A stretch of DNA of 64,000 bases from Styela clava (GCF_964204865.1 NC_135253.1:13268001-13332000); one strand, 5' to 3'. Positions 13,201 through 57,133 are shown, numbered from the stretch's first letter. Notes: generated from the letters alone by a model not told the origin. Numbers and translations are program-made.

Positions 13201-16200
13201 TGTGTTGGAGCATTCACAAACGCACGAAAAAATGTGCAGGCTCAAATGCTGATATATCAGGAGCTAGGGTTTTTGAATGCCGTAAATACTGTAATTCATA
13301 TTGATGATTGTGCACATTATATATAGGTGCTTATAATAAGAGAGGAATTACGGTATTTGCTTTAGTCAACGATCTGTTATTGATATTGTCATCGGAATTT
13401 CAATTTATAGCATCAATTGTTTCAACAGAAAAATTTTTAGGCATAAAAACTATAATTGCACAAGTGGGCAGAATGAAACACTCCAATGGGTCTGGGCAAT
13501 ATCGTATGACTACGCCAATTTTATAATTATAACTTTGTTCAATAACTATTGAGTCTTACATATAAATCAATAAATCATAAAAAAGTCAATATAAAAATAT
13601 TATTTATAGGCGAAGAATACATTTCCTACCTTCTGAAGGAATTATAGTCATTGCCCGAAGCATGAATCTTTCAACTTCATCTACAGTTGTTTCTTCAGAA
13701 CATAACAATACTTCAGGGAAAGTTGGTAACTTGGGATCATTTTCGTCAGTTGCATACAATGATATCAGTAGCGGAATGACTTCCTGTTCTTGACATAATA
13801 AAAAGTTTGGAGATCCTTTTATTAAAGTAGAATGTGCATTCCTTATAGTAATGCCTGCTTGGCCCTGTAGTGCATCCATCTTACTATGTAAAATAGTGAG
13901 AAATTTTCCGAGATGACTGACACTTAGATAGTCTTTCAACGTTAATGTCTAAAAGTAAATAAATCTGATTCAAAGACTCAAAAAAAACTAAAAAACGTTG
14001 AGATTTCAGTTCACAGTACTTCACAATTGGAATTTATCAATCAATATTTAAAATAATTTTAGTATAGTTATTTGGAATGCAAGACAGTAGTTTGTAAACA
14101 ATTATTCCCTTCTGTTGTATGAATTTTTATTTATGAGAGAAAAGTATAGTATTATTCCATAAATACTCTGCTTGCTTCTTTGAAGTTACATGTTTTGAAT
14201 TAAGAAAGTCTATGTCAAGTGTAACAAATTCATTGTTTCATATGTGTGGACTGTGATCGTGAAAAAAGCAACCTTATTCAACATGAAACTAGTTACAAAA
14301 ATGAAATATGGTTATATAGATAATTTCATTCAGCTTTACCAACTTTTTGCATCAAAGATAACAAATTGAATCTAAATATAAGACCAATAAACTTATTCTG
14401 GATTTCCTAAAGAAAAGAATTATTACGATTGTGTATAAAACTCTAAATACAAATATCATATCAGTACCATAGTGCAGTTCAAATATCCAATGCAAATGGT
14501 TTTGATCGAAACCAGAATATCATTCTCCTGCTGTTCACTTTCTTGAAGCTTTGCAATTATACCTTCAAAAGTTTTGGCAGATCTACTTTGGAGTATGGAT
14601 CGATCTTCTTTTATATCATTCTGATTATATACAAAACCTAAAAATATTATTGTAGAGATATTCAATTACTTTCTATTTTTTCAGATATAGATTTTTCATA
14701 TTTAAAGCAAAATAAATAAAAGACATATCTGATAATACAACTCAATAAAGAGAAGTTTCCAAAGTATTCCACCAATTTAAACAATTTACCAGTTTCAAAA
14801 TTACTGTAGTATTGTTGGCCTCATCATTGAGTTTTGACTGAAAATTATTGGCACCAGTCCATTTTTAAACTAAAATCTACCTGAAGTTTGATCAAAAGCT
14901 TGACTGAGTTCAAAAATTATATTCTCATCATATTCATGAAGTAACATCCAATTAGAACAAGCATTCAAATCAGCAAATCCTTCTTCTTGCACAGCCGCTT
15001 TGGCAAGTGTTTCAGGGACATTTTCACTAATCACAAGAAATCGTACAGCTTTGCGCTTTTCTCGGTTTTCGAAAACTTCCTTTGTTACATTGTCCTCTAA
15101 ATTATTTTTATTAAATATCAATGTGAATAAATTGACGCAGAAAAACAAGAGTTCAACTAGTAACAATTTCATATACGTATAGCCAAAACTTTTCTCTGTG
15201 AACTTATTCAGATTGATTTTCGTTGAATAAATATATTTTAACAGGGCAATTTTAAGTAGGGCAAAAAACAATTACTGAAATAACTGAAGGTCTGGAGCTA
15301 CCGACGAAGTATTCAGAATTAATGTGTAGATATTCTAAAAAAAATTTTCAAAAAAAATACTTGTGGGCTCGATCTCTCATTTGCTCATTTTTTAAGTATT
15401 GATCAGAACAGATTTGAATAGATTGAGTTTTGTGTACTGTAAACCCATATTTGCTAGCAGCTACGCTTCAGTCATAATTCATGCTGTTTTTAGTAGCTTT
15501 TGGCATTTGACATTTTGACTTTTAGCTTTTTTTCAATCAAATTTTTTTTTCAACTTGCTCAAAAAATATATAGCAAAAAGATGTTTGTAAAAAGTCATAA
15601 TTGTTACTGTGCTGAATGCTGATACCCACCTGATTCATCATTCACTAACTCAGTATTGTTAGTTTCCTCGTTGGCATCATCAACTTTCATTGCCTCATTT
15701 AAAGATTCTCCAATAATACCAGTCATTTCATGACGTTGTAGATCAGACAACATCACATAGGTCTAAGAAATACACATTTGTCACAAAAATTTTGGGACAA
15801 ACTTAAATACCCTTATTACCATCTCTCTGACAAACTTTTTTTGGATACTCAGTACTCAAAACGCAGCTAAATTAATGTCATATACTGGTTGTCTCAAAAA
15901 TGTTGGATCCCACTTGTCCCAGATGTCCCACATGTTCCATGTATCCCACTTTTTATTATATTGTTCCTTTTGAAGTGCTTTCGGTCAAAACCTATTCTCT
16001 CATACACATTTCTATCAATATCATCGAAGACTTTTGTTATCTACACATTTGAGATTTGTCCAGATCAGACATTTTTAATAATAGTATTCTATTGTCTTGG
16101 TCAGAGGACATCAATATTTAGGCACACTGGTGCATATCATAAATTTCAATTTTATATCGATTCAAGATTACAACAATAATAATAGAAAAATCTAGTTGAA

Positions 16201-19200
16201 AAATATTTAAATATTGTGTTTTTGTAGAATGGTTGCCAAATAAATATAGATTAAAACTGGCCCGTTGATTGCTGACGCCTGGTTTAAAATAATCTATCGG
16301 TACATTATTCCAACCTACATACTTATCAATGACGTGTGTGTCACCCGATAAAAACTCGGCTGAGATATCAATGCGTACCTAACATTTCTACGTTAGAAAT
16401 TACAACTCATGTAACTGCAAAAGCAGATAAAAAACGTGCAGCTACAAATTTGCAAAAACAAAACATTTAATTTATATAGCTTTAACAGATAGGTTTCATT
16501 GTATTGGTTACGATAATAAAATAATAATTTCTTATCATTGCTAGGTTTTAAATTTACATCTCAACAAATCAACGGAAGCGCAGCATCTACGACTACCTGT
16601 ACATTATATTTATATCGTCTATTTCAATCCATATAGCGGAGTCTTTGTAACCATTTCCTGTGGTTGTTGGGCAATATCCAGAATCAAAAGTGAATAAAGC
16701 GTACACTTAAGGTCAAAGCAGGATTTTTGATAAAATTGAACACAAACAAAAATCCTCGCTTAGCAAAATTTCTCCAGATAAACATTTTTTTGCTTTGGAA
16801 TGAAAGTGTTTCAATAATAACAATATATTCGAAACAAGTAGAACATTTGAAACAAGTGGGACACATGAGACAAGTGGGACATGTGTGACAAATTGGACAC
16901 ATGGAACAAGTGAAGCACATGGGCCAAGTGGGACGCAACATATTTTAGACACCATAATATACTCCATCAATTTGAAGCAATTAATAGGTAGTTCTAGTAT
17001 GGCAATCTATTATGATATATAAATTTTCATTGAAAGAAACACTGTGATCTAAATAAATTTTTGGACACAGTTTTAGTTACAATATTGCATCCCAATTATT
17101 TGAAATAATGTTAAAACAATAAACAGGTTAGAAAAGTGATTAAAAATGTTGATGTTGTTGAATGAAGTCGGAATGAAATTATTTAATATTGAAAGTCATT
17201 GTCTCAAACTACTTAAAACTTTTGTTCTATAGATAAAACTTTGTGTACAGTATAACGCCACAATGAAGCCAAAATTTTAAAGTTTGATCATCATGGACGC
17301 AGGCACAAGTCTTATCCCCTATTGCAGTTGTTCCCAACCCTTTTTGGCTCGCGACCCCCTTTGGTGGTTTACACATACCTCGCGACAACCTGGCTCACTT
17401 TATATACTTATCTATATACTTATCACTAAAATAAGCGGCAAAGTGGAGGCGCAGTTCTTACTTCATGGTAGCTCTTGTCGTGGTTATGGTGCTATTGCCG
17501 GTCTATTCACTAAATCGTGTACTGTACCATATTTTAGTTTATCGTGCGGAATTATCTACTTAAACATGAAACCTAACCCCAAATCCATCAAAACTGCATT
17601 CATGTTCCAATATTTATTACCATCAGAGGCAGACCTGCCATTAAAGCCGACATGCCGTGATTACGGCAGCAAAATTTGACCCGCTTTTGGTATTCAATTT
17701 GCTGCCGCAGGAACGGCATCTTGCCATTGGTCTGTGGCAGCTAAATGGGTTTGGCCATAGCTGCCATGGTTTGGAAATCCCGCCATGGTTTTGCGGAAGC
17801 TTCAGACGCCAGAAAATACTTGAAACTACACTTGGCAAAGTGAATATTGTGTAATTTAATTTTTCATCAACCTGCAGTTTTACTGAATGTGACGGCTGGC
17901 TTTGAAACCGTGTAGCCAACTACGTAATTCGTGGTTTAGTTTTTGACAAAGCTAATCTCAATCATCCTCGACTTTCATTCGATTTCGTGCCTTTGTTTTT
18001 ATATGAAGAAGAGCTGAAAAGCCGCTTTCATATTTCTTAACGTTATTTTTTTATTGTCGCTTCTTCGCCATGGTAAATAAAATAACGGAATTATAACGAT
18101 ACTGCAGTATGTAGTACTGATGTATGATAATCTGCACGATGAAACAACATAGACTACAAGCTTATCCTGCAGTAAACCCCATGGTATTGAAATATTGGCG
18201 TTCCACTGCATTGCTTCGAAGCCCGCGTGTATTCCGCATCGTGGCGCGCGAAAATGCAGACGAGTTTGTGTGACGTCACGATGGTTAACATGCCATAAAC
18301 ATCTCGCGTCGCTTGCTTGGTTTTCAAGCAGGAAGCGACATTCTGGGATCTCACGACAGTTAGTGGAAATCGCGTTTTATTGACAATATTTAACCTAAAG
18401 TCTTGTATATTTTCTACTGTTTTGCAAGACCTTCTCGACCCCCCTAGAAACACGCCGCGACCCTCAGGTTGGGAACCACTGCCCTATTGTAAAAGGAACA
18501 ACCTGGAAGGGGATAGATACATTTCAAAGAACATATTCCTACTGTTTTATTCAGTGCAGTGATAAGATTTATATTCAAAATCAGGGCCAGGCATGCTCAG
18601 ATTCATTTTGCTCACTCACCCGATCTTCCAACCCACATTGTCTCATTTTTCCAAGTTGTTGACACAAATATTTTATTTGCTGAATACTAAAATCATTCAA
18701 ATAATAATGTTTCAATCTCATCAATTTTACCTGATCATCCCATCTGAAACAACGAATGCAAATATAAAAAAGTGGAGAGCTAATTGAATTGATGGTTCAT
18801 ATTTTAAATAATCAAAATTCTGTAAGGCGGAAGCAACCATTCAAGTACTAGTACACATAATTTCGAATTGTGTATGCATTACATGCACCATGGCATTGCA
18901 CTACTAAAAACCCAGTATAGATTCAAAATAGTCTTCAAATTTTGTATTAGATTATTATGGGGGGTTTACCTAACAGTTGGTTGAAAATGAGTTTTTAACA
19001 GTCCAATGCAATGAAAGGATACACAATTCTCAAAGTCAACCCAAATAGACAAGATTACTGCATTTTTCCATACAAAAAATGATGATCATAAATCACCCTG
19101 TAATTGGTGATAGTATATCATTAAACAGAAAAATAGATAAGCAAAGCTATGTGACAAAGTACCTATGGTTTCTTAATTGAAAAAATTAAAATAAATAGTT

Positions 19201-22200
19201 AAAACCTTTTCAATATATTCTTTAAAATATCAGCCAAAAATTTAATGTCTTGTATGCTGGCCGTTTTAACAAGTTTTTGGACTCCTTTTTTAAATGTTAT
19301 ATTCAAAACTAGTGTGTGTTCTGTCATCATATCCATATCCTTTGATGACTTCGAACTGAAAACAAAATATCAAAATTAGTTTACTTGGGGTTTTTAAAAC
19401 AGCTTTCATGATTAGCAGTAAGGAAATTTAGCAACTATAACAATTGCATTAATATACAGAATAGTAAGTTAATTGTTGATAATCAAATGCACGTTATATA
19501 TTGTGTATGAATGGTTATTCCACTCATACTGAATGAGAGCCTATCACATTACAACTGCAACATTTTATATTATCTATGAGGAGGGAATAAAAATTTGATA
19601 GCAAAACATTGTCTTTACCTAATAATAGCATTCCAATCAGTAAATAGCATGAATCCTGCATTGACCAAATCCACATAAGCCTGCGCAAGATTTTCTGTTG
19701 CATTCAAGAGTTCTTGAAACTGTAGGACATCTTTTTGACCCTCAGTTCCATCTTCAGATATTAACATCAATTTAGATTCAACCTCATGCAAGTAATCAAT
19801 ATCCACATCTAAAATTTTAAGGTCAAGTTTATCTTCTTTTTATCACTTCAATACATATCCCACAAGATTAGTTTAGGGTTTAAATCACATAATGGATGGT
19901 TATATACTAAAATATATCAGGATAAAATACTTATTGAACAACCAACAAGCCACATGTTGTTTGACACCAAACGACAGAGCAATTAAATCATCAAAATAAA
20001 ATGGAACAAAAAGTAAACTGAACATTCCAGCTGGTTATAAAAACAAGAAGTCCTATATGAATTCAAACAATAACAAACATGTAGTGGTTTGAAGTTTACA
20101 TCATTGATATCACAGAGATTGATTTCTAGATGTTTCTTCAAGCGTGCACAAGTTGAAAATATGATATACATTAATGTTTTCAGAATTTCAAGCAGATATA
20201 TTTAATTCTAAGAATTAAACTGCTTAAGAGGGAAAAATAAAAATTAATCATTATTTATAATATTTTATTTTTATTGCAATCATTCTTACTATTTTCAAAA
20301 GCCTTCATCCGAATAGCATTAATTTCATCATTACCTGTCATAAAAAAGCAAAAACAGCATTAGAGATAATAAAATGAGTTTATCAATATTCACAAACTTC
20401 AATAATAAAAAGGTTTTAGATGATCTTATTGGAAATTCTGAATGCACTAAATAAATTACACTTCAGACCTGATAGGACAAAAATTAGTATGTAGATGGTA
20501 GTTATTTTCTACCTCAATGAATTTCTGAAAAAATTGGCAGTGAATATGTGGTTTTCATACAGTTGATTGAAACAAACTAAAATTCTTGAAGTTTCAATAT
20601 CATTATTTAAATCTGTTCAAAAATGAGAAAGGAATATATTATTATTTTACCGTCTCCATTTGTTTCGGATGGACCTGATAAATCAAGTTTGATGCTTTCT
20701 TTCAATGTTGCAAAGTTGGAATTTGTTTTTTGTAGATTACCAATTGTATAAACACCATAATTGTTTACTTCTTGAGCATAACACAACACAGCTTTTTCCT
20801 CCGAGCCATACCATTGTTCATTTGCCTTGTACCATTCAATGTCTTTACCTGAGTCTGCCTATTGGTTGAAAGATGAAAGTGACACTAATTTGTACATACT
20901 AAATTCTATCACAGTAAAATATTATTGGGATATAGAATTATTACTATGGGATAAATGTATTTATCTCAAGAGATGAAGAATGACAATGGAGTAACATAAT
21001 TATTTGATGAGAAACTTTCTTTACCTTTTTTTGAACCAAAGAAGTACTCATAAAAATCCTAATATTGAATCTATGCAGGTTAATCAGCAATGACATTAGG
21101 GCAGCACAATGTGACAGAGTATATTAGGCCTATGTGACATACTGATGAAAATAACTGCGAAATGAGCAGAAGTAACGATTACAACAAAAAATATACAAAT
21201 TGAAAAACAAAACCATTTTTACCCATTTACTCAGTAGAACACCATCAGATTCAACATTTGTCCAAACGGTTTTGCATCTTCTAAGCAAGCTTTTTAATCC
21301 AGACAATTTATCGAGATGAAATATCAATTTTTCAAATCCTGCAACACCATCAGAGAGAAACAACCATTTGGCAGCATACATAGGTTCATGTCTCATTGAC
21401 TCCATAGCAACCATACAGAGACCTCTAACATCAGATTCATCTGAATTTTATGAAAAAAATATTTTAATAATGACAAAATATTAAAGACATAAGGTACAGA
21501 ATTTGATTTAATGACTGCCATATTACCAGTCATTTTCGTCTGCAGCCATTTAATTAATTCTGCTTGTTTACTGAAAGCTTTCAGTACATCCAACTGTTTT
21601 TTGTTAATTTCTATGACAGCACGCAGCTTTTCAAAGTCTTCAACTGATCCATCCTGGAAGGTTCCCTAAAGCAATATTGTAAATACATCAATACCAATTA
21701 GTTTGTTATACATACAAACAAACAAAAGTTTGAAATTTCAAGCCATATGACCAAGAATAATCACACCGATTTGAAATATTTTAGTAGAGGCAATTTTGAT
21801 TGCCAACCAATCAAGTTTGTAGAAAGTACAAAACTAGTAAAGCTTGGATTAGATCGCTATTACTCATAAAATCAACAGGTACTAACACTGCAATTGAATA
21901 TTTTATGATAAAAAGTAGACATGTCCAGTCATATATACTTTTGTACATTTCATTACATCTACTAATGTAAATTACACTTCACACTGGCTATTTTCAGAAG
22001 ATCAGATTCAGATATTTCCCTTTTGTTGTGCATGAAATATTGTAAAGTTGAAAAATGCGAAAAATTTGAAAATGAGAAAGAAAGAATCAACCAGAAATGA
22101 TATTATTTGTATTATATTTTAGTCTAGCTTCCTAATATCAAACCCGAATGAGTGCAATTACAACATAGGAATAGGAGGCACGTAGTAATTAATAATAAGT

Positions 22201-25200
22201 ATGTAATTTGCAGTACCTAAATTTTATATATATATGCTATTTTAAATATTTGCATTGTATAGTAGTGGGAATCTAAATCGGACCATGTTAGCATTAGCAA
22301 GAGCACAAATGGCCCAGTTTTGCATCATACCAATGTGATTCAATAAAGTCTTGTTTAACAAAACTCAAGCTTAACACAGTACTTCAATTTAACTCTTCAA
22401 ATGATTTAACAGTTATGCTGGGGATTTGAATACCCAAGTGCATACTTTATTTATATAGATGCCAAGAAATTTAGAAATAAACATTTTCAAGAATGAAGCC
22501 CAGAATGTAAATTTTAAAACCATTAAGGTTTGTATTTATCCAGAGATATCAGCATAGGCATCACTACCTAGAAGTTTTGTAGCAATTCCGCAGCAAGATT
22601 ATTGATCATCAAAAACAGTGTAGGTCCCAAACAAAAACCCAGTGGGACCCTGTGGGTCACAAAAAAGGCAGCAGAACAATATGTACCCGTTCAAACTTGT
22701 TGCGTACTATTAATCAAATTAATAGTGAGTAGTTGATTTGCTACACCTAAGGAGCCACAACTTATAAATTAAGTTTTTGTGATTGACGGTACCTAAAGCT
22801 TTTTAGTCCAATAAATGTTTTACTAACATATACTTTCCTCTTCAATTTATCATACTTAGGGTCGTATTTAAAATTACATGAGATGGGCAATTTTTGCTAT
22901 GAAAACCGAACTGTGATTATAAATTACACGCTTCATAAAAAAATCAGTAGCTTATTATAACTTTGATAAACATATACTTTGCCTATAGCAGTAAAATATA
23001 AGTTTATGTTTTGTTTTGCCTGTTTTAAAGAGTGGAATTCATTTGGCTAAGTGAAAGTTTGAATATTCCTAATCGAAGTGTCATTGGTGCTGGATTCACA
23101 AATATGAATTGATTTACTGCCTTACCAAGAAATATGTCATATAAATATGTCATATAAATTCATTTACGGTATATATATTGTTGGAGAATTCAACAGGAAA
23201 GCTTGATTCAACAGAGTAAAATTACTTGTACTTTATCTTGATTAATCAGACATTGGAATTACCTAAGTTTCTACATTGTCAATGACAGGGAGGTATGATA
23301 CTTTATGATGTATGAGCATGATTGACTGTTGGCATGCGATATGGAAAAGATCAGTGATATCTGATGATATAACATACAAATTAAGTTTCATATCAGTCAC
23401 TTTTATATTCATTTAATTCTAAAAGTGTGGGTGATAAATGTGTTACCATCATATGACTATGTTATAAAAAAAATATGGTTATAGGCAGTGTGCATGTCAG
23501 AATATTCGGCAATTTGAGTACTACTTGATGCTGCTGGTATATCGAGATAACAATTTCCCACTATCATAAAATGTTTTAAACAATACTAAAAGGTAGTTAT
23601 CGAATATGCAAGTGCAAAAATATCATCAATTGGGAGGCTTATAGTTAATTTTAAGACTAAACTTATTTACTATGCGTCAGGTTCATTTCAGACCATAATT
23701 CTTCACAATGGGTAGACTAGTGGGATTTGTGGGTACTCACTTAGTATGTGTACCAGATTGAGATTAGGCCATCATTTTATTCTGATTTTCCTAACTTTAG
23801 TTCTATTACGAGTTCGGGGACTGTCTGTGTTAGCCAAGTGAATATACCCCCTGCCCATAGGCTTCCATCCCTTTACAAAACTTGATTTAAAGTAGTCGAA
23901 CAAAATTAGTTACCTTCTTATTGGTACACATCCTTCTGGAGCGCCAACCAGTGATTTTTAAAATGCCCCCTATGAGTTGAAAAGCCCAATAGTGAAAAAA
24001 TAGTGGGCAGTAATGTGTTCTTGATAAAATTGGTCAAAATTATAGCACCTCTGTCATATAATGATGCCATAACTTATCTTCTCAAATTTCATTGAGCATA
24101 CTCCTAACCCCCCATTTTACACGAGTACTTTTCTAGCTGTTTGTCCTTTTTTATATAAACCACCTGAAATTTATGAATGGCACTGAAGTCTCCTTTTAAG
24201 TTATGACTTTTCTGAAAATCTGATATCCATTGAATTGTCTCCATGCTCCTTTGTATTTTAAAGTGATACGCAATTTGTCTTGCTCGAAGTGTAGACTTTT
24301 TCTCAGAATCTGCTTCTAAAAATAATTTTGACATAAAATCTGATTGAAGACATATAAAATTTCAATCTAATTTGTATTATTATTTTTTTTTTAAATGTTA
24401 CTTTTAATATTTTTGACATGATAGCATTTTTGTAATTGAGGTTAATTCTAAAGGTTGTACGAATGGTAAAATTTATGGCTTTTCCATGTAATTTCCACAT
24501 ATTCTTTTCATACCTTCAAAATATTTATAGAGAACAAGAAGTTCACACTTTATCTTTGCCTCATCTCCATCAGTGAAGTCCAAGGTATCAAGTATGTATG
24601 TATGTATGTTTATTCGTCTCGTAAAAGCAATATAAAAGAGTAAGTAATTATAAATACTGAAGACGGGATGTATGCACAAGACCATCTTGGCCTAAAACAC
24701 AGATGTGCGGCATACACCCCTTTTGATATATATAAATTATAATAGGGTAAATCGAATATGTACAATATGGTCCTTTATACAGGCAGTTGTGCAAGGAGGG
24801 TGGGTGGATGCGGTAACAGGGATATGGGTGGAGTGTACAAAACTGTTTGTACAAAGGAGTTTGTTAGACAAAACAACATCTATAAATAGAGACACAACAC
24901 AACATGAAACACACTGCATATGAATATAGTAATAAAAAAATTTTTTTAAAAAAAAAAAATTAAGAATCTGGATGAATGTACAATACCATTGAGTGATGAT
25001 ACCACATACTATAAAACGCGGGAATGGTCAAGTTTAAAGAGTGTGTACATATATGGTATGCACCACTCAAGGGCGACAGTGTTATAAGTGGTCTATGGCT
25101 GTTCTGGCCAAAATGTGACCCTACAGGTTTTGGTGAAATATGATAAAGGTATGTATCAAGTGACTCACTATTGTAAGGTTTTTTTTGGAATTCTAGATTC

Positions 25201-28200
25201 AGCTAAAAACAATGAAGTTTCAAAAAAAAAAAAAATAATAATAAAAAGCATTTCCACAAAACCTATTATGGTTGCATTTCAGCCAGAAGATTAGAATGGT
25301 ATAAAGGTACAGTGGGATAGGGAATGATAAGTTAAAAAGAGAAGCCATTTTACCATGTCATGGATTTTCCAATGTAAATTAAAATAATAAAATTATATGG
25401 TATCCTGGGATGAGCAGAAGAAAAAGTGTGATTCGGTGATAGGTAGCAACAATGGAAATAAATTGAACAGCATGCTACTCAAACAAAAACCATTGTCCCT
25501 ACTCCCTACTGTTTGAGCATTGAAGTTCTATTGAATTGTACTATCTATAACCTAAATTGCTGTGCTTTTGTTGTTGTCTAATTACGCATGATAATGAAAT
25601 TAGAATGGTGTGCTAGTTATTAATTCAGTCCATTGTTCTATATTGAATCCGGGTGAAGTATCCTGTGGAGTTATTGAAATTGTCAGCTGGTCTATGGTGA
25701 CTGAAGAGGAGGACAGTTTCCTGATAGTTCATTCAATCCAAATAATCAACAGCTCTCCCTTTCAGTGTTGAATTGACCTTAAAAAATAATCTCCAAACAG
25801 TAACATGTTCAAAGCAGAGAAAATTGCTAATATGATGATAATATATATTGTTTAAGTTTGGAACAAAATTCTGAGTTCGATTTTGAATTTTTGATGTCAT
25901 CGGGTAGGGAATTCCAAGCTTTTGGTCCACATACTGCGATTGATTCTTGTGAAATACTTTTACTGACAAATGGAATAAAAAAATTATCTTTATTTCTGCT
26001 GTTTGAATTTGAGTTTGCTTGGAACAGGCTGTTCAGGCTGGACGGAAGCTCTCCAATGTGACAAGAGAACATCATATTACATAGTTCGAATTTAGCTAAA
26101 TCCACAACTCGTAGTAGCCTATGCTCTTTAAATAAGTCATCAACTTTTTTGCGATTACCTCTATGAAAAACTCTTCTAATAAAGCGATTGCAAACACTTT
26201 GAATTTTTTTGAGAATGGACGATTGGCGATGAACATAAGCTGAGGCACAATAACGAATATGGCTTTCTATCAGAGAGTGGTATAGAGATATTGAACAAGA
26301 TGTATTTAAGTTGTTGGCTATTTTCGTAATGGCACTAAGAGACGACCTTGTTTTCGATAGAACCATATTGGTGTGTTGTTTCCAAGACAATTTTTCATCG
26401 ATCATTACACCCAGAAAGCGAGTCTGATTAACTCTTTCTATATTTATTCCATTTAATTCCAAATTTTGTTGCAGAGTTGGACACTTTTGCTTCGGCGTGC
26501 TAAATATCATATATTTAGTTTTATCGACATTAATAGTGAGTTTGTTCGCAGACAACCAAGCTTGAATATTTTCTAAGTCGGTATTTGCTTTGGTCAAAAC
26601 TTCAGGCAAGTTTTTGCCTCGAAGATATGGCGTTGAGTCATCAGCAAAAAGTATGATATCAGAGTGAAGAAGAGAATTCGGAAAGTCGTTAATAATGATT
26701 GAAAAACATAATGGAGCCAAAATAGAACCTTGTAAAGTACCTACAGTCAAATTACAGTATGTGCTAGATGCTACATCATTGTATATAACTACTTGTTTCC
26801 TTCCTGATAAGTAGCTTTTAAACCAATTATAACTCTGACCTCTAACGCCAATATGGTGCAATTTGGCTAGTAATATGTCATGGTCAATACTATCAAATGC
26901 CTTGGAAAGGTCCAAGAACATACTGAGAGTATACTCATTCTTATCAAATCCTTCTAGAATTTTACTGACAAGCAGGGATGTTGCATGAGATGTTGAATGA
27001 TTTTGACGAAAGCCAAATTGTTGTGAATAAAAGAAATTTTTTTGGTCCAGGAAATGGTTGAGTCGTTTGTACATAATTTTTTCTAGAATTTTTGAAAATG
27101 CTGGAAGTAAGCTGATCGGTCGGTAGTTTTTCACATCTTTTGCATTTCCTTTTTTGAACAATGGCATAACTTTGGATAATTTGAACTGGTCTATGTATTT
27201 ACCAGATTGTAATGAGCAGTTAAAGATATGTGCGAGAGCACAAATACAATTCCAGGGCATCATTCGTATAACTTTAAAGGGAATTCCATCTATTCCACAA
27301 CTGGTTTTGGGTCGAAAAGATTTCAGAATATTTTGGACTTCGAAAGCTGTTGTCGGGGCAAGAAACATGGAGGTTTTACTGGGATGCCCCATATATTGCT
27401 TAAAGTCATCCCTTCTAGTATGAGTAAACCGTTCGACCATTTTATTTCCAATTGTAGAAAAGTGCGAGTTAAAATGATCTGCTATTTCGACAGGATCCGA
27501 GGTTTCCTGGCCATTAATAGAAAATACTTTTGTTAGATTTGGTTTAGAACGCCCAAGCAGATCGTTCATAGTACGCCAAGTTTTCTTAAGATCATTACGA
27601 TGTCTACCTAGTAATGACTTGTAATAATTTTGTTTCTTAGCAGTTATCAATTTCTCATATTTTTTCTTGCATTCTGAATATTTAAATTTGGTCTGCTCTG
27701 ATTTTTCAGTAAGATAGTTTTTGTATAGTTTATGCTTTTTTTTCTGCATTTTTAAGAGTTCCTTGTCAAACCATTTATTAATATTTTTAATATTTCCTTT
27801 CTTCAGAGGGAAGCAAGTTTTAAAAGATTCAGAAAAATACTCATTAAAAATTCTGAAGGCTATATCAGGATCTGTTTTGCTGAACACAGCAGAAAAGTCA
27901 CTTTGTTCTAACATGAGTTTAAAATTATCTAAATTTGAGATATTATATTGCCTAAAGTATTCGTTTTCTGCCTTGCGAAGTTTTTTTCTTAATGGAATGC
28001 AAACCAGGACTGGCAGGTGGTCTGAAATAGGATCCACTATTATTGCACTGCGGGGTTTACAATCAAAGATGTTTGTCCAAATATGGTCAATGATTGTAGA
28101 GCTGCTTTGAGTGATTCGAGTTGGCTTTGACACCACAGGGTAAAATGAAGCCGAATTCATCAGCTCACAAAATTCATCTACAGTCTTGTTTGTTTCCAGA

Positions 28201-31200
28201 AGATTATAATTGAGGTCTCCCATGAAAATACAATTTTTCGATAAGGTTTGGAGTGTCGATTCCAGAAAACTAATAAATTGATTATTGCTTTGACTATCTG
28301 ATAAGGGAGATCTGTAAATTGTTCCACACGTCACAATTCTATCCTTCAAATAAATGTCTACGAAAGTGGATTCAAAAATTCGCTCATTCATAATTGAAAT
28401 GTCAGGTCTAGCCTTGAAGGTAATATTTTTTTTGATGTATAGGCCAACAACCCCACCTTTTGAAGTCACTCGAGGATTTGATAAAAAAGTATAGTCACCC
28501 AGGTTCTTGTGGGATCCTATCTGATTTGGTTTTAGCCATGTTTCATTGACTGCTATTAAATCTGGGCAGACTGTCATTGAGGCTATAAGAGCTTCAAGTT
28601 TTGAAAAGTTTCTTGGGTTGGCCAAGGAACGCATATTAATACACATTGTGACAAGTGGGTTCAAGTTATCACTGCATAGGATATCTAAATTAGCGGCAGA
28701 AAGATATTGACAATCAGACATACAAATTTTTGTGGAATCGCTTATTTCATCATTATCAATATTCAGTAACAAAGCCTCAGTAAAAAATTCGTTAAGAATT
28801 TCTGGGGTCAGAGTCGAGGAAGGGTCATTATTCAGGCATAGGTCATTTACTTCTGTATTAGATAACGAGCTGAATGGCAGGCTATTTTGTAGGCAAAGTC
28901 TACAGTACCAAGGTATATCATTTGGTTCATTACATAGTTTACGAAACTTTCCTGTTTCATCGTTCCTAGAAAAAAGATCATAGAAATTACTGTAAGTCAT
29001 ATCCGTTGCCCATAGAAACATAAGCGAATTAAATTGCCCAAAGAAACATAAGCGATTGAATTTATTCAACCTTATACAGATTTAACTGCTGTAATATGTC
29101 TTAAGTCAGACCGTGCTTATTATTTATTGTTTATTCTGCATTTGTAATTAAATAAAATGTCTTTGGCACCCACTTTCAAATACCAAAACCAAGTTAAAAT
29201 ATGACTAAAAAAACTATTTTATATGCTTTAGAAATATGTAAAATTGCCACCTTCATCAAGTTGAGAGCAAAATTTACTAAGCTCTTTTCTCGTTTTCAGC
29301 CACATATTGTTCAGTACATGACGCCAATCAATGTTCCATACACTATTTGTTAGAGTGGATTTTTTGCCAAGCATCACATTACCAAGTTGTTGAAGTTTTG
29401 AGTAAAGTATTTTACTTCCCTAAATTTGAAAAGAAAAAAATCTTTATAGTGGCAGCAAAATGGAAGCTTCATAGAATAAACAATTTTAAACAAATTGAAA
29501 AAAATGCAAAACAATAAAAATTAGTAAACAGTAAGGTAAATTCGAAAAAATCAAACAAGAGAAGAATTCTCAAAGAATTCTCACAATTGTTTAAAATTAG
29601 AAAAATATTTTGTATGTGTGGCGCTAAATTATCAAGAAAAAAAAGACTCATGGTGCAATTAAACACAAAAAAAAGATGCTGCCTGTAAGTACTCAATTTT
29701 GTGATCGTTATTGTCTACTTTATGCCTTTCAAAGTTTGAAACTTGTAGGCCTAAAAAATAAATGCAACAGGTAAACTATTCTTTCTTATCCATGCCTGAT
29801 TTTCTTTTGAAATACTAAAAAAAATCACTCATGTTTGGTAAACACGGTTCTGAAGATAAATTAACTGCAGCTCGTGTCCATAGAAAGGTAAAATGATTTT
29901 ATTGATTCTTATACTCAACATTTAAATAAGAAACAATAAAAAATTGACAATAATACCAATATGTAAAATATTCAATCATAATAGTTATGTTTGACGCATT
30001 TCTGTAAACTTTCGATGCACACTTGGAAAATTGCCCCTTTTGATGATTCTCGATTGATCGATTGAATGGTCAAGAATATAGAACTGACAAAATGTACCTC
30101 AAGTTGAGCCACATCCGATATACAAGACATTTCTTCATCCGATATAAAATCTTTATAAAGTTTTCCCAAACATAGTGAGGATCTATCTCTATCACAAAGA
30201 TCCTCCAATCCTACACAGTCCACTTTAATCTCTGAAATATGATAGCAACATTAAACAAATTTTTCTTCCTTGCTCTTACAACATGTTTTATAGGAATTCT
30301 TTTCACTCAATATGTAGTTTCTGGTTAAACATTAATCTCCACTCTACATAGTTCATTGAAAATTTAATGGTTGTTGACAGCGATACCAATGATTGAGTTT
30401 TTGCATTTTTGAGTTACTTTTAAATAAACTAGATTGCAATATTTGCAATATATATGCCTCTAGCAACACCAGCATTCTACCAATTTGAGAATATGCAATA
30501 GTCAAACCACAAACATCACTTTTACTGCTTTAACCCCTTGCCCACTTCCATCTGTACCAATTGCATAATTTGTATCATTTTAACCGAACATGCCCCATGC
30601 ATGTGCATAATTTATGTTGAGTGCACCATTTTCACCACATTCATTGGGCAATACACTTGGTCATATTTAGTGAACGCCAACACATATTGTGACAGAAATA
30701 AATCGAAATCCTACAAAATCAAACAAAACAGACAACAGAAAATAGTCAACATATCATACTCTTTATCATTAATATACCATGGTAACATGCAAAGCAATTC
30801 TTAGCCATAGTCAAGCATAAATATACTTTGCATTAGTGAGTCTAATGACTGGCCTTCCTTCTATCACACTCAGCAAAATAACATCACTGCCGTTTAGGGT
30901 CCCTGACCCCTGCTCTAAAGCTTTATACATAAAAAATAACCACCAATTTCCAATACTACCGGCAACGCATTTGAGTCAACATCGGTGAAAACAGGCAAGG
31001 CTGACCTCGAAATGCAAATAGTAATGACGGTATTAAAACAATCAAACTTTTTCGTTGGCTTTTGTGGTTTGTGCAGTTGAGTGGAATGAAGACAATATCA
31101 CAAAAACAAAGAATGTCGCAAATGGAAAAATGGTTTGGTACCAGAACTACACTGGTAAAAGCATCAAAATGGTATACAAATTTGAAATACCGTATTTCCT

Positions 31201-43200: not shown

Positions 43201-46200
43201 GTGGGATAGAATTGGGCTAAATGGCAAGAAGAAACTCATTTCATGTCTGTGAATTTGTAAATTCAAGTTAAGCTATGATTTTGAGGTATTATAATATTAA
43301 GTTTTGTTCAACATTTGAGTAGTAAAAAAAGAAAAAATGATAATGAATATCTGTAGTAGATTATACACATTTATGCATTCATTGGAATAATGAAATAAAT
43401 AGGATAAACTAGTAGCTGTAAAGTGTCTGTGATGATGTGTCTGTCAGTGATTCTCAAAGTTTAACATGCGAAGTCGGATTCATTTGGGGATATTTTAACA
43501 ATATTAAATATTATTGTTATCAATAAATAAGGTTCCACCTGTTGATATTAGAAAGATATTATTAGTAAGTTGTTAATAATCTGCAAACCAAGTTCTGTTT
43601 TCTTTTTTCCAGATGTAGTTTTATTACCAGCACCTCTAAGTTTAGAATCTGGTTCAGCCGTAATAATGAATTAAAGGTAAATCTGTATTGTTTTCCAAAA
43701 AAATAAATCGATACTCTGACGACGTTACTTTCTACACCAGCAGACTACTGACATTAAACAACTTATAGTCAGCAAAAGCAAACAAAATATTAAAATGAAT
43801 AAAAGGAAAACAATAATATGAATTTGCATAGCATAGTGAACCGTTTGTAATGCAATGGAACAGACTATATATCTGTAACAAAAGAAAATCACAAGTACCA
43901 AAAAACAGTTGAAAAACAATCGGTAAGTTTATTTAGAAAAAAATTAAAATTACTGAGTACTGCTTCACTTTTAGTATGCGGGACAATTGGTATCAAAAAA
44001 GTTTTTAAAAGATGCTTCTATTCTATTTTTTGCTTGTTTTTGTTTTGAATAAAGCTAAATTTGCATTTTTTTAGAAGGTGATCTCCTCTTTTCTATGGAG
44101 AGTATTTAGTTCTTTTTTCTATAAGAAATGGCATATCATTTTTTCAATAATGACATACCATGACTAGTTTCTGTTGCCTGTTCATTGTTCTGAATGAGAG
44201 AGTTTTTATCATTCTGCATTTCTTCATGCGTTTGATATCCTTCTGTTTATGAAGAATTGATAGTACAATGATAAACTTCAAAACATAAAAATTTTGGATT
44301 ACAATTCCATCATGTCATGTACTAGAATAAATGGCCATTCCAACTATCAACCTAACATAGATAAGGTAGTGCATTTTGAATATTGAAACATTGAACTTTT
44401 CATGTTTGTGTTTTTGTCAACTCATCAATAGCAAAAGAAGATATTCACGTCTTCTTTTAATGATTACAATAACCTTTCCCAGTTTACATAAATCAAAAGG
44501 ATATTTAGGTCTTCTGTTAATAGTTAAAAGAACCTCTCAAAAATTGAACAAGACAAAAGTTAACAACAGTAGAGTAATTGAATAGAAATAAGTAGAGTAA
44601 TGTTAATATGTAAACAGAAGTCATTTGAAGTAAGAGATACAATTCTCAGATTCAACAGGATGTGTTTGTATTTCATTGGTGGAAATAATAAGGGAAATAT
44701 AGAGTGTAAAATGTTTTCAAAAACATAAATAAAATATCACAATGTTATCCAACATGCTATTATTCAAAAAGAAACTCATTCCATGTCTGTGAAGTTGTAA
44801 ATTTAAGTTAAGCTTTGATTTTGAGGTATTATTATATTAAGTTTTGTAAAAAAAAATGGGTAGTGGAAAAAGAAAAAATCATCATGAATATATGTAGCAA
44901 GGTTCTACTCATTCCTGCATTTATTAGAAAGAATGAAATAAAATGGGATAAACTAATAGCTGCGATGCGTCTGTAATGATGTGTCTTTCAGTGGCCATTG
45001 TGTGTAATATTCATTTTCCTTCAGTTGAGATGTAAGGTCAAATAACAGTCAAAATATCCTATTTTTAATTAACCATAGTAAATCTCATAGGTTAAAATAT
45101 TACCCTCCTTCTCACACAATTCTTGGTTAAACTCTTCATCAGCAATAGTTCCAACCTGTAGCATAAATTTAATTTATAATGTTCTTGTTCAATAACAACT
45201 ATCCATATCTAATCAAGTTATATGTGTTATCACCAGTTATTCCTAATTTGCATATTCGTTTATTATTAATCAAATCCTCAGTAGTGTTTTAATTTTTTGC
45301 ACATTTGATCTATAAACAGGTCAGTGAAAATACAAAACATCAAAAATAAATACAAGTTATGCAAAAATACAAATTTCACAAAGCATTTCAATAAACTATA
45401 ACTTTTGTGTTGTATGAACCGACAACTCAACAGCTTAAACATAACTAAATAGCAATCATTAATACAAACCGGATGTTGCACCATTTTGGCGGCACTGAGA
45501 AATAAATCCAATTTTTCTTCGTTATCAGTAGAGGTGATGCAAAATTGAATAAAGTGAAGAGGCCAGTCAGTGTTTTCTGTCATCTCTCTGTACATTGATT
45601 TTAATGTTTGAAGTATTATATAATTGTATATAGAGTCAAAAATGAATGCATCAGGTGAATGAAATATCAAATATGAGACAAATCTTACGTTGCTTTATCT
45701 TGCCAAATGTCCACGATGAGTTGTTTGAGAATTTCATTGTAAGTCTCTAGTTCCTTTCAACGGTTGTATTAAAGAAACATGACTTTCATTGAAAGCTTGG
45801 CTACATATCACAGACAGAAGTTCTGTAACTTTCACGTTCATTTCAAGGTCTATTCAAAATATATTTTTAATTTTTTGTAAATGCTTTGTTCAACCGTATA
45901 TAAAAATATAAGAATATACAAAATAAATTGTATTTAAGATTTGAAAAATGTAAATAATTTCATGCAGTGAGACAATAATGCATTTACATACTAGATGTGA
46001 AAATATCTGCCAAGCAATTTTCATTCTAACTCACTATAATCCAAAAATAATTTTAATGTTCATCTATCCAGATCAAATTTTTGATTATAGTCAAGGGAGA
46101 AGTGCTAATTGACTGCCTATTATTATTTTATGGAACTTGATAAATATAGAAAAAAAACTTAAATGCACAATGGATTATACATTTCCCAATGTATTTGAAT

Positions 46201-47264
46201 AATTCATCTCTGTTAACATTACAGTTTACCTTATGATAAATAAGCACTCACCCTCATCATTCAAGGCAGTAACAAAACATGACACATCTTTATTTTTCTC
46301 TTGAACAATTTGAATAATTCTTCCAATAGATTCACAACTCCCTTTCGTTTTTCTCATCTTCATGATTTCAATTCGTTCATCTTGCAATGAAGAGATTTTG
46401 CGAATAGTTTATGAATATATTAGAATTATAATAAAGAAAAAAATGATATGATTCTAATATGTGATGAAATATGGATTCTAGACAGATTATTATCATATCA
46501 TCAGATTTTAAATTTTCATAACAATTTTCAATTTGACAAACATTTCTTGTGATAAGATTTATTCCAAACTTCACCCTCAAGTGTGTTTACTTGTTAAGAT
46601 ATTTCACAGTCTAGTATTTGTACCCACATACAAAAGGATGTTTAGTCCCAATCATGCAAAACATTTAACACTGTTTTTCTTTATTCGAAAAATTAGGCAT
46701 CGAGGCAACCAATGTGATATGCATATTTAATAAATGTCGAACCGCCTGTTTTATCCGATCAATAAAAAAATTCTGTTTTACTATTAATGCGACTAATATA
46801 ATATTAAATTATGGCCTTTTAACATCCCCGATCGTCAATGACCATAAAATTTGTTTATATCATTAGACGACGTGTAACGATACAAATTTTACCACTAATG
46901 TTGGAAATAAATTTCTGAGAGAAAGTTTTGCGGCTATTCTTTAAATTCAACTCCTAACTATTAGCGCTGGCAACATCGTGAAAAGTAGAATTTCATCGTA
47001 TTAAACATGGTTTTTAGGTATAAAAGTAATATGTTAGGGGAAATGATTGGGTCAATATAATATCAGGAGGAATAAACCAGTGTATTACAGAAAAAAATCA
47101 TGATTATTAGTGATCGTAATACCTTTGGTAATGATATCATCATCGCGAAGCAAGAAGGCCAACTTCTTCATTCTTGCCTCATCATACACCACGCATTTCT
47201 TCAGAACGACCGAGATACATTGCAAACGTGCAGAATTTTCCACACCCGCACTCATCTCGGCCAT
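1..47264 (-). CDS. RNF213: RNF213/mysterin-like giant AAA+ ATPase / E3 ligase gene with N-terminal CARD-like domain (3' end beyond window)
   Basis: GT-AG exons joined by hand, in transcript order: 47123-47264, 46252-46380, 45812-45849, 45689-45753, 45470-45587, 45104-45155, 44159-44242, 40378-40428, 39977-40045, 39121-39222, 38411-38516, 38190-38335, 37831-38055, 36638-36894, 36243-36470, 35761-35980, 34976-35058, (unresolved gap), 30098-30231, 29251-29419, LINE-split exon, 24164-24339, 21527-21665, 21223-21440, 20651-20858, 20290-20334, 19619-19808, 19206-19355, 18620-18743, 15630-15762, 14881-15096, 14513-14637, 13630-13948, 11305-11477, 10730-10859, 8696-8868, 6788-6922, 5186-6705, 4589-5105, 4346-4516, 1-4273. 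RNF213 signature peptides: SGVGKSLYVK, FDPDPSYELTTDNVLKM, GETGCGKT, DEANT, GKPGSSKS, LDEIGLAEDSPNMPLK, ISNWALDPAKMNRG, FFGLRDYYSL-like segment. Some small N-terminal exons may be missing or misplaced. Confidence 0.93.
941..1057 (-). other. RING-finger domain, C3-E-C4 variant
   Basis: CIPC-GKIIQVPIKMP-CGE-FI-CKDC-AQIAVSQEIKL-CPLC-PESLPSDFS, collinear with the human RNF213 RING (..CPYCLTALPDEFS). Confidence 0.85.
4346..5105 (-). CDS. RNF213: Two exons (4589-5105, 4346-4516) encoding the AAA4 Walker A and Walker B motifs
   Basis: YVSLRDVER...NEALCENVYLMTIC...PLYLVGKPGSSKS; FQCSA...VVLDEIGLAE. Flanked by 72-80 bp GT-AG introns. Confidence 0.92.
5186..6705 (-). CDS. RNF213: Exon encoding the AAA2 end and AAA3 (Walker A GETGCGKT, Walker B FYDEANT)
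   Basis: ORF 5173-6651 extended to the acceptor at 6706-6707; donor GTGGGA at 5185. Confidence 0.93.
7154..8069 (-). pseudogene. Buster/ZBED5-like transposase remnant (BED finger fused to hAT dimerisation end; DDE core deleted; interrupted by a SINE)
   Basis: RKWDETYLKYGF...PVCLICSKRLSNSALAPAKLQRHLEASH; then TYLCESAFS..IK.KRRS; after the SINE, ..VEPRFK*ISKKMQKQPSH*. Confidence 0.85.
7251..7589 (-). mobile_element. tRNA-derived SINE, copy 1
   Basis: A box TGGCTCAACGG (7567-7577), B box GGTTCAAATCC (7498-7508), 3' AATAAA plus (ATCCT)n tail; second copy at 9599-9921. Confidence 0.85.
9599..9921 (-). mobile_element. tRNA-derived SINE, copy 2 (more diverged)
   Basis: Alignable end to end with 7251-7589; degenerate TSD tggcac/tagcac. 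Confidence 0.8.
11041..11185. repeat. Intronic tandem duplication of about 68 bp
   Basis: ggaaacaggactttgaatacataggcaaaaaatgattttggc repeated twice with small changes. Confidence 0.75.
15883..16959. mobile_element. Non-autonomous TA-flanked element with long imperfect TIRs built of 9-bp subrepeats (foldback/Tc1-mariner-like MITE)
   Basis: Left end tactggttgtctcaaaaatgttggatcccacttgtccc... is the reverse complement of the right end ...caagtgggacgcaacatattttagacaccataata; unit (tcccacttg)n. Confidence 0.65.
17325..18481. mobile_element. hAT (Buster-group) MITE
   Basis: TIRs CAGTTGTTCCCAACC / GGTTGGGAACCACTG; subterminal GCGACCC; 8-bp TSD CCCTATTG (17317-17324, 18482-18489). Confidence 0.88.
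24592..29065 (-). mobile_element. 5'-truncated CR1/L2-group LINE, same orientation as the host gene
   Basis: ORF2, then about 1.2 kb of 3' UTR ending CCCGTC...GACGAATAAA(CATA)n; candidate 4-bp TSD TTGA on the minus strand. Confidence 0.88.
25827..29069 (-). CDS. LINE ORF2: PHD-finger remnant, APE endonuclease, reverse transcriptase
   Basis: WYCRLC; INMRSL, NETWL, GDLN, IDHIW, SDHLPV; YRPISLL, FLDLSKAFD, QGS, FADD. Uninterrupted; roughly the first 20 codons are junction filler. Confidence 0.92.
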   Translation of the reverse strand: MNKFNRLCFFGQFNSLMFLWATDMTYSNFYDLFSRNDETGKFRKLCNEPNDIPWYCRLCLQNSLPFSSLSNTEVNDLCLNNDPSSTLTPEILNEFFTEALLLNIDNDEISDSTKICMSDCQYLSAANLDILCSDNLNPLVTMCINMRSLANPRNFSKLEALIASMTVCPDLIAVNETWLKPNQIGSHKNLGDYTFLSNPRVTSKGGVVGLYIKKNITFKARPDISIMNERIFESTFVDIYLKDRIVTCGTIYRSPLSDSQSNNQFISFLESTLQTLSKNCIFMGDLNYNLLETNKTVDEFCELMNSASFYPVVSKPTRITQSSSTIIDHIWTNIFDCKPRSAIIVDPISDHLPVLVCIPLRKKLRKAENEYFRQYNISNLDNFKLMLEQSDFSAVFSKTDPDIAFRIFNEYFSESFKTCFPLKKGNIKNINKWFDKELLKMQKKKHKLYKNYLTEKSEQTKFKYSECKKKYEKLITAKKQNYYKSLLGRHRNDLKKTWRTMNDLLGRSKPNLTKVFSINGQETSDPVEIADHFNSHFSTIGNKMVERFTHTRRDDFKQYMGHPSKTSMFLAPTTAFEVQNILKSFRPKTSCGIDGIPFKVIRMMPWNCICALAHIFNCSLQSGKYIDQFKLSKVMPLFKKGNAKDVKNYRPISLLPAFSKILEKIMYKRLNHFLDQKNFFYSQQFGFRQNHSTSHATSLLVSKILEGFDKNEYTLSMFLDLSKAFDSIDHDILLAKLHHIGVRGQSYNWFKSYLSGRKQVVIYNDVASSTYCNLTVGTLQGSILAPLCFSIIINDFPNSLLHSDIILFADDSTPYLRGKNLPEVLTKANTDLENIQAWLSANKLTINVDKTKYMIFSTPKQKCPTLQQNLELNGINIERVNQTRFLGVMIDEKLSWKQHTNMVLSKTRSSLSAITKIANNLNTSCSISLYHSLIESHIRYCASAYVHRQSSILKKIQSVCNRFIRRVFHRGNRKKVDDLFKEHRLLRVVDLAKFELCNMMFSCHIGELPSSLNSLFQANSNSNSRNKDNFFIPFVSKSISQESIAVCGPKAWNSLPDDIKNSKSNSEFCSKLKQYILSSY
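31190..31753. mobile_element. pogo/Tigger-like MITE
   Basis: TIRs CCGTATTTCCTGGCGAATAAGTC / GACTTATTCGCCGGGAAATACAG; TA on the left, TG on the right. Confidence 0.8.
32740..34335 (+). CDS. Penelope RT - Cys linker - GIY-YIG endonuclease (N-terminally truncated)
   Basis: PKIHK..RPII, DVVSLYTNI, GTAMG, RFIDD, CGRKSCSTC, VIYLISCKKCGMQYIGET, RITEH, GMN; frame open from the junction to the stop. Confidence 0.92.
   Translation, partial: PKPGRLRLQPKIHKENHPSRPIISTNGTATEKLSAYVDYKLTPLMCKRVIPSYIRDSMDFLNHLQKIKTIGQESLLVSMDVVSLYTNIPHNDGIEAMEKYLNRFNEDKQEIPWIAKAANLVLTNNNFVFDEQHYLQIQGTAMGTKLAPKYANIFMANLESNLLDKTPLKPQYYCRFIDDCFLIWTHGKEKLSEFVTLANSLHPTIKFTFECSTNWITFLDVKVHIINNKLETEIFSKETDSHQYLSPSSCHPKHVTKNIPKSLFIRIRRTCSTNEHFDKHAKIMKTYLTKRNYKENLVDDAIQSAKELDRKLLLIPKTETKKETLLPFITNYHPTQPNLRKIFSDYQYILDNNDRLKEIFPKPPRLAYRKCPTLRDKLVRAKLKPETPVKKNPGFFKCGRKSCSTCQYSEERKIATNKQKTAEIRIRQKVTCNSENVIYLISCKKCGMQYIGETGRHLKYRITEHIRSIKTQNKDLVVGAHFSQPGHSLKDLSVIGIEKLFHDHIYRKNKESHYIHLFGTHEPQGMNIKEV
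34703..34752 (+). ncRNA. Minimal type-I hammerhead ribozyme motif
   Basis: CTGAAGA (34711-34717), stem II GTCTGACC-TT-GGTCAGAC, GAAA, palindromic stem III ACGT, triplet GUU, stem I TGT/ACA. Confidence 0.8.
37098..37648. mobile_element. Old pogo/Tigger-like MITE
   Basis: TA|CCGTATATTCCGACTAAG ... ATTAGCTGAGAAATATGG|TA; resembles 31190-31753. Confidence 0.6.
42870..45000. repeat. Diverged intronic duplication of about 580 bp (42870-43450 vs 44410-45000)
   Basis: Shared blocks actcatcaatagcaaaagaagatattca (42908, 44420) and aagttaagct.tgattttgaggtatta. Confidence 0.75.
45812..47264 (-). other. CARD-like death-fold domain encoded by exons 1-3
   Basis: ATG in caacaATGG context. Peptide MAEMSAGVENSARLQCISVVLKKCVVYDEARMKKLAFLLRDDDIITK/DERIEIMKMRKRKGSCESIGRIIQIVQEKNKDVSCFVTALNDE/DLEMNVKVTELLS, with phase-compatible splice sites. 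Confidence 0.65.
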
Positions 47265-47439
47265 TGTTGAATGACAGCAACGGCAAGTATATTTTTAATT
47301 CTGTGGCATTTACGATTGATTGCAATTGTAAATATGCTAAACTGACGGAATATATATATATATGATCATGAAAAATTATAAATATAGCATAAAGCTGAAT
47401 ATATATTTATATATATAAAGTGCAATGATATGACACAAG

Positions 47440-52084: not shown

Positions 52085-52190
52085 CATTTCCTCCTTTCCT
52101 CGTATTTGTTATCCTATACCACGCATTTCTTCAGAACGATCGAAATGCATTGCAAATTTAGAATATTTTCCACATCCGGATTGATGAGTA
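52085..52190 (-). pseudogene. Decayed copy of coding exon 1
   Basis: DVENILNLQCISIVLKKCVV* vs exon 1 GVENSARLQCISVVLKKCVVY; TAG at 52114-52116. Confidence 0.75.
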
Positions 52191-56952: not shown

Positions 56953-57133
56953 TCCAGCTTGGAGGCCTGAGTACTGTTGTGAAAGGAAAAAGTAGATTAT
57001 CAGTGGTGACAGCACTGATAAAAGCTGAAGAGTTTCCCTAGTCATTTAACTAACAGGAGTTTACAGTAACTGACTGGCAACAGTGTTGCTTTCCGTTTGG
57101 GTGACAGCAGGACAGTGTAAACAGATTTATTTC

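Follow-up and report, generated by a model that had tools for sequence, protein, structure and literature searches.

A probable CARD at the N-terminus of tunicate RNF213-family genes, and a probably disabled copy of one such gene in Styela clava

The giant protein RNF213 is an E3/AAA machine that serves cell-autonomous immunity, and to our knowledge its vertebrate form has no N-terminal CARD. Placing a CARD at the N-terminus of a large P-loop ATPase is a design used in cytosolic defence by the CARD-bearing STAND (signal transduction ATPases with numerous domains) proteins APAF-1, NOD1/2 and NLRC4. The RIG-I-like receptors (RLRs) RIG-I and MDA5 are likewise large ATPases that begin with CARDs, in their case a tandem pair followed by a DExD/H helicase and a C-terminal domain. 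A 2026 report describes human RNF213 as binding MDA5 and adding K63-linked chains to it at K137 and K743 (PMC13588011). Here we analyse a stretch of AT-rich eukaryotic DNA from the tunicate Styela clava (GCF_964204865.1 NC_135253.1:13268001-13332000; 64,000 nucleotides, referred to as the window throughout), which carries an RNF213-family gene on its minus strand. Our overall reading, which we regard as probable, is that the first two exons of this gene encode a divergent CARD of the CARD_2 type, that the copy in the window is disabled, and that a twin of it elsewhere in the genome is the copy that is transcribed.

Set beside these systems, the window gene resembles vertebrate RNF213/mysterin (PDB 6TAX, 7OIK and 8S24) in its AAA core, in the region that follows the core and in a linker exon, but it differs in that the tunicate N-arm can barely be aligned to that of vertebrates and in that the window copy is frameshifted. 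The tandem CARDs of RIG-I and MDA5 and the CARD of MAVS (PF16739) are both the best profile match of its N-terminal domain (P about 1e-5 to 1e-6) and its nearest structural neighbours, whereas a single CARD, an RNF213 body and sub-threshold Pfam scores set the gene apart from the RLRs, including the true RLRs of the S. clava genome. The logic may be that of the CARD-bearing STAND ATPases, which use NB-ARC or NACHT modules where the window gene has a dynein-like AAA+ array and E3 modules. Closest of all are the tunicate 'rnf213-alpha-like' predicted proteins, among them P0152 (S. clava XP_077968440.1, 5532 aa), P0006 (S. clava, 5859 aa) and P0001 (Ciona intestinalis XP_018671622.1, 4302 aa). 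These are paralogues of the window gene that share its N-terminal domain, a conserved 'WPL.F' segment and the RNF213 body (P0152 has the same introns as well), and none of them is annotated with a CARD.

The assignment of the downstream exons to RNF213, made in an initial annotation of the window from its sequence, proved sound. In phmmer searches of PDB RNF213 chains, window 6705-5176 matched mouse RNF213 residues 2085-2596 (E 1e-122) and window 4273-2 matched residues 2821-4037 (E 1e-112), and linker exon 13948-13607 matched residues 1786-1852 (E 6e-10); judged by sequence, the homology of the dynein-like AAA core to RNF213 is unmistakable. When 1.84 billion representative proteins were searched with the AAA exon, the best matches were tunicate 'rnf213-alpha-like' proteins, namely P0001 from Ciona and P0002, P0005, P0006 and P0007 from S. 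clava. Ordered tblastn matches to P0006 continue to window position 71, equivalent to P0006 residue 5019, and the open frame of the last RNF213 exon runs past the start of the window; the position of the C-terminal RZ finger is beyond the window.

At the other end of the gene, the initial annotation had proposed that three short exons encode a CARD-like peptide and are joined in frame to the RNF213 chain. We assessed splicing with contigs from four RNA-like runs, belonging to three studies, aligned to window 41401-47400. The joints 47123/46380, 46252/45849, 45689/45587 and 45467/45152 were present in all four runs, each reading CT..AC on the plus strand and thus GT..AG for the gene, and the first two exons had accordingly been placed correctly (47264-47123 and 46380-46252, minus strand). 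Exon 1 is supported by RNA contig pieces, by its joint to exon 2, and by homologous first exons on contig C13 and at C4:3.556 Mb; upstream of the ATG at 47264, RNA-like contigs extend the 5′ untranslated region (5′UTR) to at least 47337. The third exon, drawn as 38 nt (45849-45812), was mistaken. No joint at 45812 was found in the contigs of the four runs, and every contig read on to 45689 and then through 45587-45467 and 45152-45103; exon 3 is therefore 45849-45689. The peptide that had been quoted was right but for one residue, as the sequence gives MRKTKGS and not MRKRKGS. The proposed in-phase splicing into the RNF213 chain fails for the window copy as assembled, in which the real exon 3 puts the frame out.

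We next consider the N-terminal domain itself. The roughly 90 residues encoded by exons 1 and 2 very probably have the fold of a CARD, a divergent one nearest to the RLR/MAVS type. A family profile was built from P0155 1-95, P0006 1-100 and P0001 15-115 (P0155 being a 510-aa S. clava protein annotated as 'uncharacterized'), with or without the window exons. Evidence from the window was taken exon by exon, and the exons entered local alignments as separate partial rows. Aligned with hhalign to the Pfam-positive CARD_2 domains of RIG-I-like genes in the same S. clava genome, the family gave a P of 2.2e-5 when it comprised database proteins only and 1.6e-6 when the exon fragments were included, as against 0.09-0.2 for reversed family profiles and a lowest value of 0.1 among 40 column shuffles. 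The match to classical CARDs (PF00619 type) of the same genome was weaker (P 9e-4), and Death domains were not matched (P 0.17-0.31); CARD_2 against CARD, our positive control, gave 8e-9. Pfam matches pointed in the same direction: CARD_2 was the sole match of exon 2 (E 0.058, 13.8 bits, profile positions 38-81 of 93) and the better of two matches of exon 2 in the twin copy (E 0.022, 15.2 bits), and residues 35-111 of Ciona P0001 matched CARD (E 0.047, 14.1 bits). Among the structural neighbours of P0155 1-100 in the ESM Atlas, eight of ten were CARDs of MAVS, AIRE or RIG-I-like proteins, with template modelling (TM) scores of 0.59-0.66. By family hhalign, Pfam and Atlas neighbours, then, the domain is a CARD whose affinity lies with the RLR/MAVS (CARD_2) type more than with classical CARDs or with Death domains, as had been proposed.

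Several results weigh against this assignment, and they would fit a lineage-specific helical bundle unrelated to CARDs, whose CARD signals were chance matches between helical sequences. None of the Pfam matches of exon 2, the twin exon 2 or P0001 reaches the gathering score (28.2 bits for CARD_2, PF16739; 23.9 bits for CARD, PF00619), and neither exon 1 nor P0155 has any Pfam match. Single exons aligned with hhalign to the RLR CARD alignment gave P values of 0.14 and 0.073, consistent in register but not significant. No CARD was retrieved from the PDB by sequence, either with the exon-2 profile or with P0155. AlphaFold, run on P0155 without an alignment, produced a poor model with six helices in residues 2-110 and a predicted local distance difference test (pLDDT) score of 40-57 there and 41 overall, and Foldseek with this model found nothing at E <= 0.5. 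We nonetheless consider such a bundle highly improbable, as the profile-profile P values lie between 2e-5 and 2e-6 where those of the controls are at least 0.09, and the signal is graded from CARD_2 through CARD to Death. Moreover, the weak Pfam matches are independent, in that they involve different sequences and two CARD families, and they share one register; most Atlas neighbours have the CARD fold; and entries for the CARDs of RIG-I, MDA5 and MAVS recur in the weak Foldseek top 50. The likeness to RIG-I and MDA5 first noticed by eye is thus above chance for the family profile, although each exon alone is only weakly CARD-like or, in the case of exon 1, without a Pfam match. The death-fold search by structure, run on P0155, had a divided outcome, with mostly CARDs among the Atlas neighbours and no significant Foldseek match. 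A tandem CARD in exons 3-4 was also considered and rejected: the helical region there has no CARD signal, and we therefore describe a single CARD and not a tandem pair.

The same domain stands at the N-terminus of three RNF213 models, those of S. clava P0006 and P0152 and Ciona P0001. Exon 1 aligned to P0006 1-44 with a z of 7.7 against shuffles, and exon 2 to P0006 46-89 with a z of 3.6. The N-terminal exons of P0152 were found letter for letter at C4:3.556 Mb, where the positions and phases of the introns after exons 1 and 2 are identical to those of the window gene. The RNF213 paralogue on C13 is preceded, at a distance of 56 kb and in the same orientation, by a homologous first exon; a candidate for its second exon (L018 9446-9517) was dropped, as it looks like AT-rich noise. 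In all, CARD exons and RNF213 are arranged in this way, on the same strand, at four loci of the S. clava genome. In the AAA exon, the paralogues P0152, P0006 and P0001 are about 50% identical to the window gene. These data are best explained if several tunicate RNF213 paralogues inherited the CARD-RNF213 layout from a common ancestor.

Among 157 RNF213-like proteins that we collected, the CARD domain was present in these tunicate ones only, many of the others being N-terminally truncated models, and none of the vertebrate-like N-termini in the collection resembled the tunicate domain. In searches for homologous proteins, P0006 1-100 retrieved itself only, and the open segment of exon 4 and P0155 retrieved nothing. 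The precomputed Pfam annotation of P0006 consists of PF20173 alone. The literature searched (one library) held no description of a CARD on RNF213. We consider the CARD-RNF213 architecture to be real and, as far as we found, undescribed, the fused proteins existing as unreviewed predictions.

That the CARD belongs to RNF213-family genes, as first claimed, is thus upheld by three tunicate models, by the intron positions of a paralogue and by the 5′ end of a transcript contig of about 9 kb. This last piece of evidence comes from run X1, in which a contig of 9032 nt has the CARD exons at its 5′ end and extends for another 7.6 kb in the 3′ direction. That CARD exons and AAA exons share one RNA we infer from the size of this contig and the order of the exons, and this indirectness counts against us, as does the older S. 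clava annotation, in which the CARD-bearing N-terminus (P0155) and the RNF213 body (P0005, 4287 aa) are separate genes. A newer model merges the two regions into P0152. With a split older model and a merged newer one, gene models are evidently unstable at the junction of CARD and body.

Both points would be expected if the CARD exons made up a shorter gene of their own, one for a CARD adaptor placed head-to-tail upstream of RNF213, with the giant models arising as annotation merges. The contig of run X1 is identified with the CARD exons by its 5′ end only, and the N-arm from 45.4 kb to 24.3 kb of the window has almost no detectable homology, both of which leave room for such a gene. We nevertheless find it very unlikely, since 7.6 kb of additional 3′ sequence makes the contig far longer than the mRNA of a small adaptor, the CARD is joined to RNF213 in three independent models from two genera, and the arrangement repeats on the same strand at four S. 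clava loci. The gap in the N-arm is itself bridged by weak matches, in the right order, to P0006 1324-1371 and 1911-1956. We therefore retain a single gene, in which a CARD (exons 1-2) and a helical segment (exons 3-4) would lead into a long N-arm, and this into the dynein-like AAA core and the E3 module.

The window copy of the locus lies on contig C4, and the entire locus occurs again, with 95% identity, on contig C14. Exon 1 encodes an identical protein in the two copies, and exon 2 is 93% identical. In exon 3, the window differs from both the RNA and C14 by a cluster of four changes at 45754-45762, one of which is an additional nucleotide outside any homopolymer run, the other three being further differing positions there. 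When the RNA-supported exon 3 is translated, the window frame coming from exon 2 reaches a TGA at 45736-45734 after 128 codons, whereas the frame of the C14 and RNA version is open and is conserved in the S. clava homologues P0155 and P0006. The initial annotation had overlooked this frameshift, which directly follows the CARD in the window copy, and also the C14 origin of all the transcript evidence. The latter is apparent from the letters in which contigs and window disagree: across exons 1-5 the counts of such letters equal the counts of differences between window and C14, with the exception of one extra letter in the exon 4 piece of run X1, and the listed contig variants coincide with C14 variants, exon by exon, in three studies. 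As the contig variants are all of C14 type, the transcripts come from the C14 locus.

Further differences between the copies lie downstream. The X2 contig has a loose end after exon 5 that maps exactly into a 7.6-kb segment found in C14 only, so that the window lacks exon 6. The content of this segment (Table 1) suggests tandemly repeated N-arm exon modules whose number differs between the two copies. In addition, a long interspersed nuclear element (LINE) in the window interrupts an open segment, a probable coding exon, which C14 retains undivided and which matches P0006 1860-1893, weakly but in the right order. With the stop in exon 3, the missing exon 6 and the LINE, there is no uninterrupted frame from exon 1 to the AAA/E3 exons at the window locus. 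We read the C4 and C14 copies as recent paralogues on different chromosome-scale contigs, of which the C14 copy is the expressed gene; the window locus is probably a pseudogene or misassembled, with either a decaying 5′ half or an assembly error at exon 3.

The intact state of the 3′ end speaks against a dead gene. The large 3′ exons (6705-2) contain no stop or indel in either copy over some 2200 codons, with a synonymous difference (pS) of about 2.5% and a ratio of nonsynonymous to synonymous difference (pN/pS) of about 0.35, and by this measure the window copy may yet be functional, its frameshift being perhaps an error of assembly. One could accordingly suppose that the window holds a working CARD-RNF213 gene whose frameshift is either such an error or bypassed by alternative splicing, for instance by joining the short exon 3 as first drawn to a cryptic acceptor deeper in exon 3. 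The intact state of exons 1-2 in the window and their near-identity to those of the twin would fit this, and because contigs drop rare variants, weak expression of the window copy could go unseen. On the other side stand the C14 type of every exonic variant in the contigs of three studies, the lack of a joint at 45812 in the RNA contigs, the position of the extra base within a four-change cluster and outside a homopolymer, the absence of exon 6 and the insertion of a LINE into a probable exon. On these grounds we judge a working window copy unlikely. Most likely, the window holds a duplicate that was disabled recently; at best, its product would be a protein without the link to the CARD. For annotation, this means that the window locus should not be treated as an intact CARD-RNF213 gene, the expressed gene being its twin on C14.

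The features described here are collected in Table 1, together with other elements of the two loci. Degenerate copies of exon 1, of about 23 codons each, occur 5-10 kb upstream of both twin genes, one on the window side and two on the C14 side; they may be remnants of duplicated first exons. Two mobile elements of the window other than the LINE are listed as well.

Table 1. Exons of the RNF213-family gene and other features of the window and of the C14 twin locus. Coordinates are window positions unless prefixed with C14; ORF, open reading frame; LTR, long terminal repeat.
Feature	Coordinates	Strand	Description
Exon 1 and 5′UTR	47123..47337	-	ATG at 47264; 47 codons + 1 nt; GT donor after 47123; first half of the CARD
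Intron 1	46381..47122	-	742 nt; GT..AG; phase 1; 742-nt skip (CT..AC on the plus strand) in 4/4 runs; position and phase as in paralogue P0152
Exon 2	46252..46380	-	129 nt; phase 1 to phase 1; second half of the CARD
Exon 3	45689..45849	-	161 nt in the window, 160 nt in RNA and C14; joints 46252/45849 and 45689/45587
Exon 4	45467..45587	-	121 nt; conserved 'WPL.F' helical segment after the CARD; tblastn to P0006 131-177, E 2e-4
Exon 5	45103..45152	-	50 nt; from RNA contigs; following transcript exon not present in the window
LINE	24595..28943	-	Full-length; endonuclease and reverse transcriptase (Pfam); 1084-aa ORF slightly exceeds the insertion; window copy only
Short N-arm/linker exon series	6758..24310	-	tblastn with P0006, P0001, P0005, P0007 and P0152; order as in tunicate RNF213 models
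N-arm/linker exons, examples	24310-24164, 21617-21223, 20855-20649, 19809-19594, 18745-18617, 15097-14879, 13945-13622, 11469-11290, 8869-8675, 6934-6758	-	
Large RNF213 exons	2..6705 (6705-5176, 5119-4574, 4537-4292, 4273-2)	-	AAA core and start of the E3 module
C14-only 7.6-kb segment	C14:18570262-18577884		One or more transcript exons (exon 6 among them); sequences similar to window 44165-44244
Degenerate partial exon 1 copy	52105..52179	-	In-frame TAG; 5 kb upstream of the window gene
Degenerate exon 1 copies upstream of the C14 twin	C14:18585704-18585772 and C14:18589716-18589793		One of the two with an in-frame TAG
Penelope-like element	32736-34784	+	Reverse transcriptase and GIY-YIG; ORF 32872-34335; window-specific insertion, C14 continuous across the site
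BEL/Pao LTR retrotransposon	57083-63308	+	DUF1759, Peptidase_A17, integrase zinc finger and DUF5641 in consecutive ORFs

Partners for a CARD of this type may exist in the same genome. S. clava encodes an RLR with CARD_2, DEAD, ResIII and RIG-I_C domains, and a cluster at C2:17755678-17768138 (L003, L004, L005 and L011) comprises three intron-poor genes with tandem CARD_2. In this cluster L005 is a clear RIG-I-like receptor, and L003 has CARD_2 only and no helicase in the 694 residues read by Pfam. A MAVS-like candidate was seen at C6:11059999-11060229 (L006, ORF 136-1830, minus strand); it is 565 aa long, and its sole Pfam signal is an N-terminal CARD_2, whose 27.4 bits fall narrowly short of the cut-off.

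In the intact genes, the CARD could make CARD-CARD contacts with such CARD_2 partners, whether RIG-I-like receptors or the MAVS-like candidate, and this contact would dock the E3/AAA machine onto RLR-MAVS assemblies, which it might then ubiquitylate or nucleate. Argued by analogy, docking of the E3/AAA machine onto CARD_2 assemblies seems to us the most economical reading; a receptor in which AAA oligomerisation drives CARD signalling through its own E3 activity, as the initial annotation had envisaged, is possible but speculative. Human RNF213 reaches MDA5 as a separate protein, and in tunicates the corresponding link would sit within one chain. A wider proposal, which we put forward tentatively and hold to be rather doubtful, is that tunicate RNF213 paralogues are built into RLR-MAVS signalling by a CARD_2 domain of their own and that the vertebrate RNF213-MDA5 link descends from this arrangement or parallels it.

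If this were true, RNF213 would be a component of CARD signalosomes and not just a coat-forming E3 ligase. On the evidence presented here, the closest invertebrate relatives of vertebrates bear an RLR/MAVS-type CARD, one that standard Pfam scans miss, on several of their RNF213 paralogues. RNF213 and CARD signalosomes would thereby be connected in a concrete way that can be tested, and the connection fits the report of an RNF213-MDA5 interaction in humans (PMC13588011).

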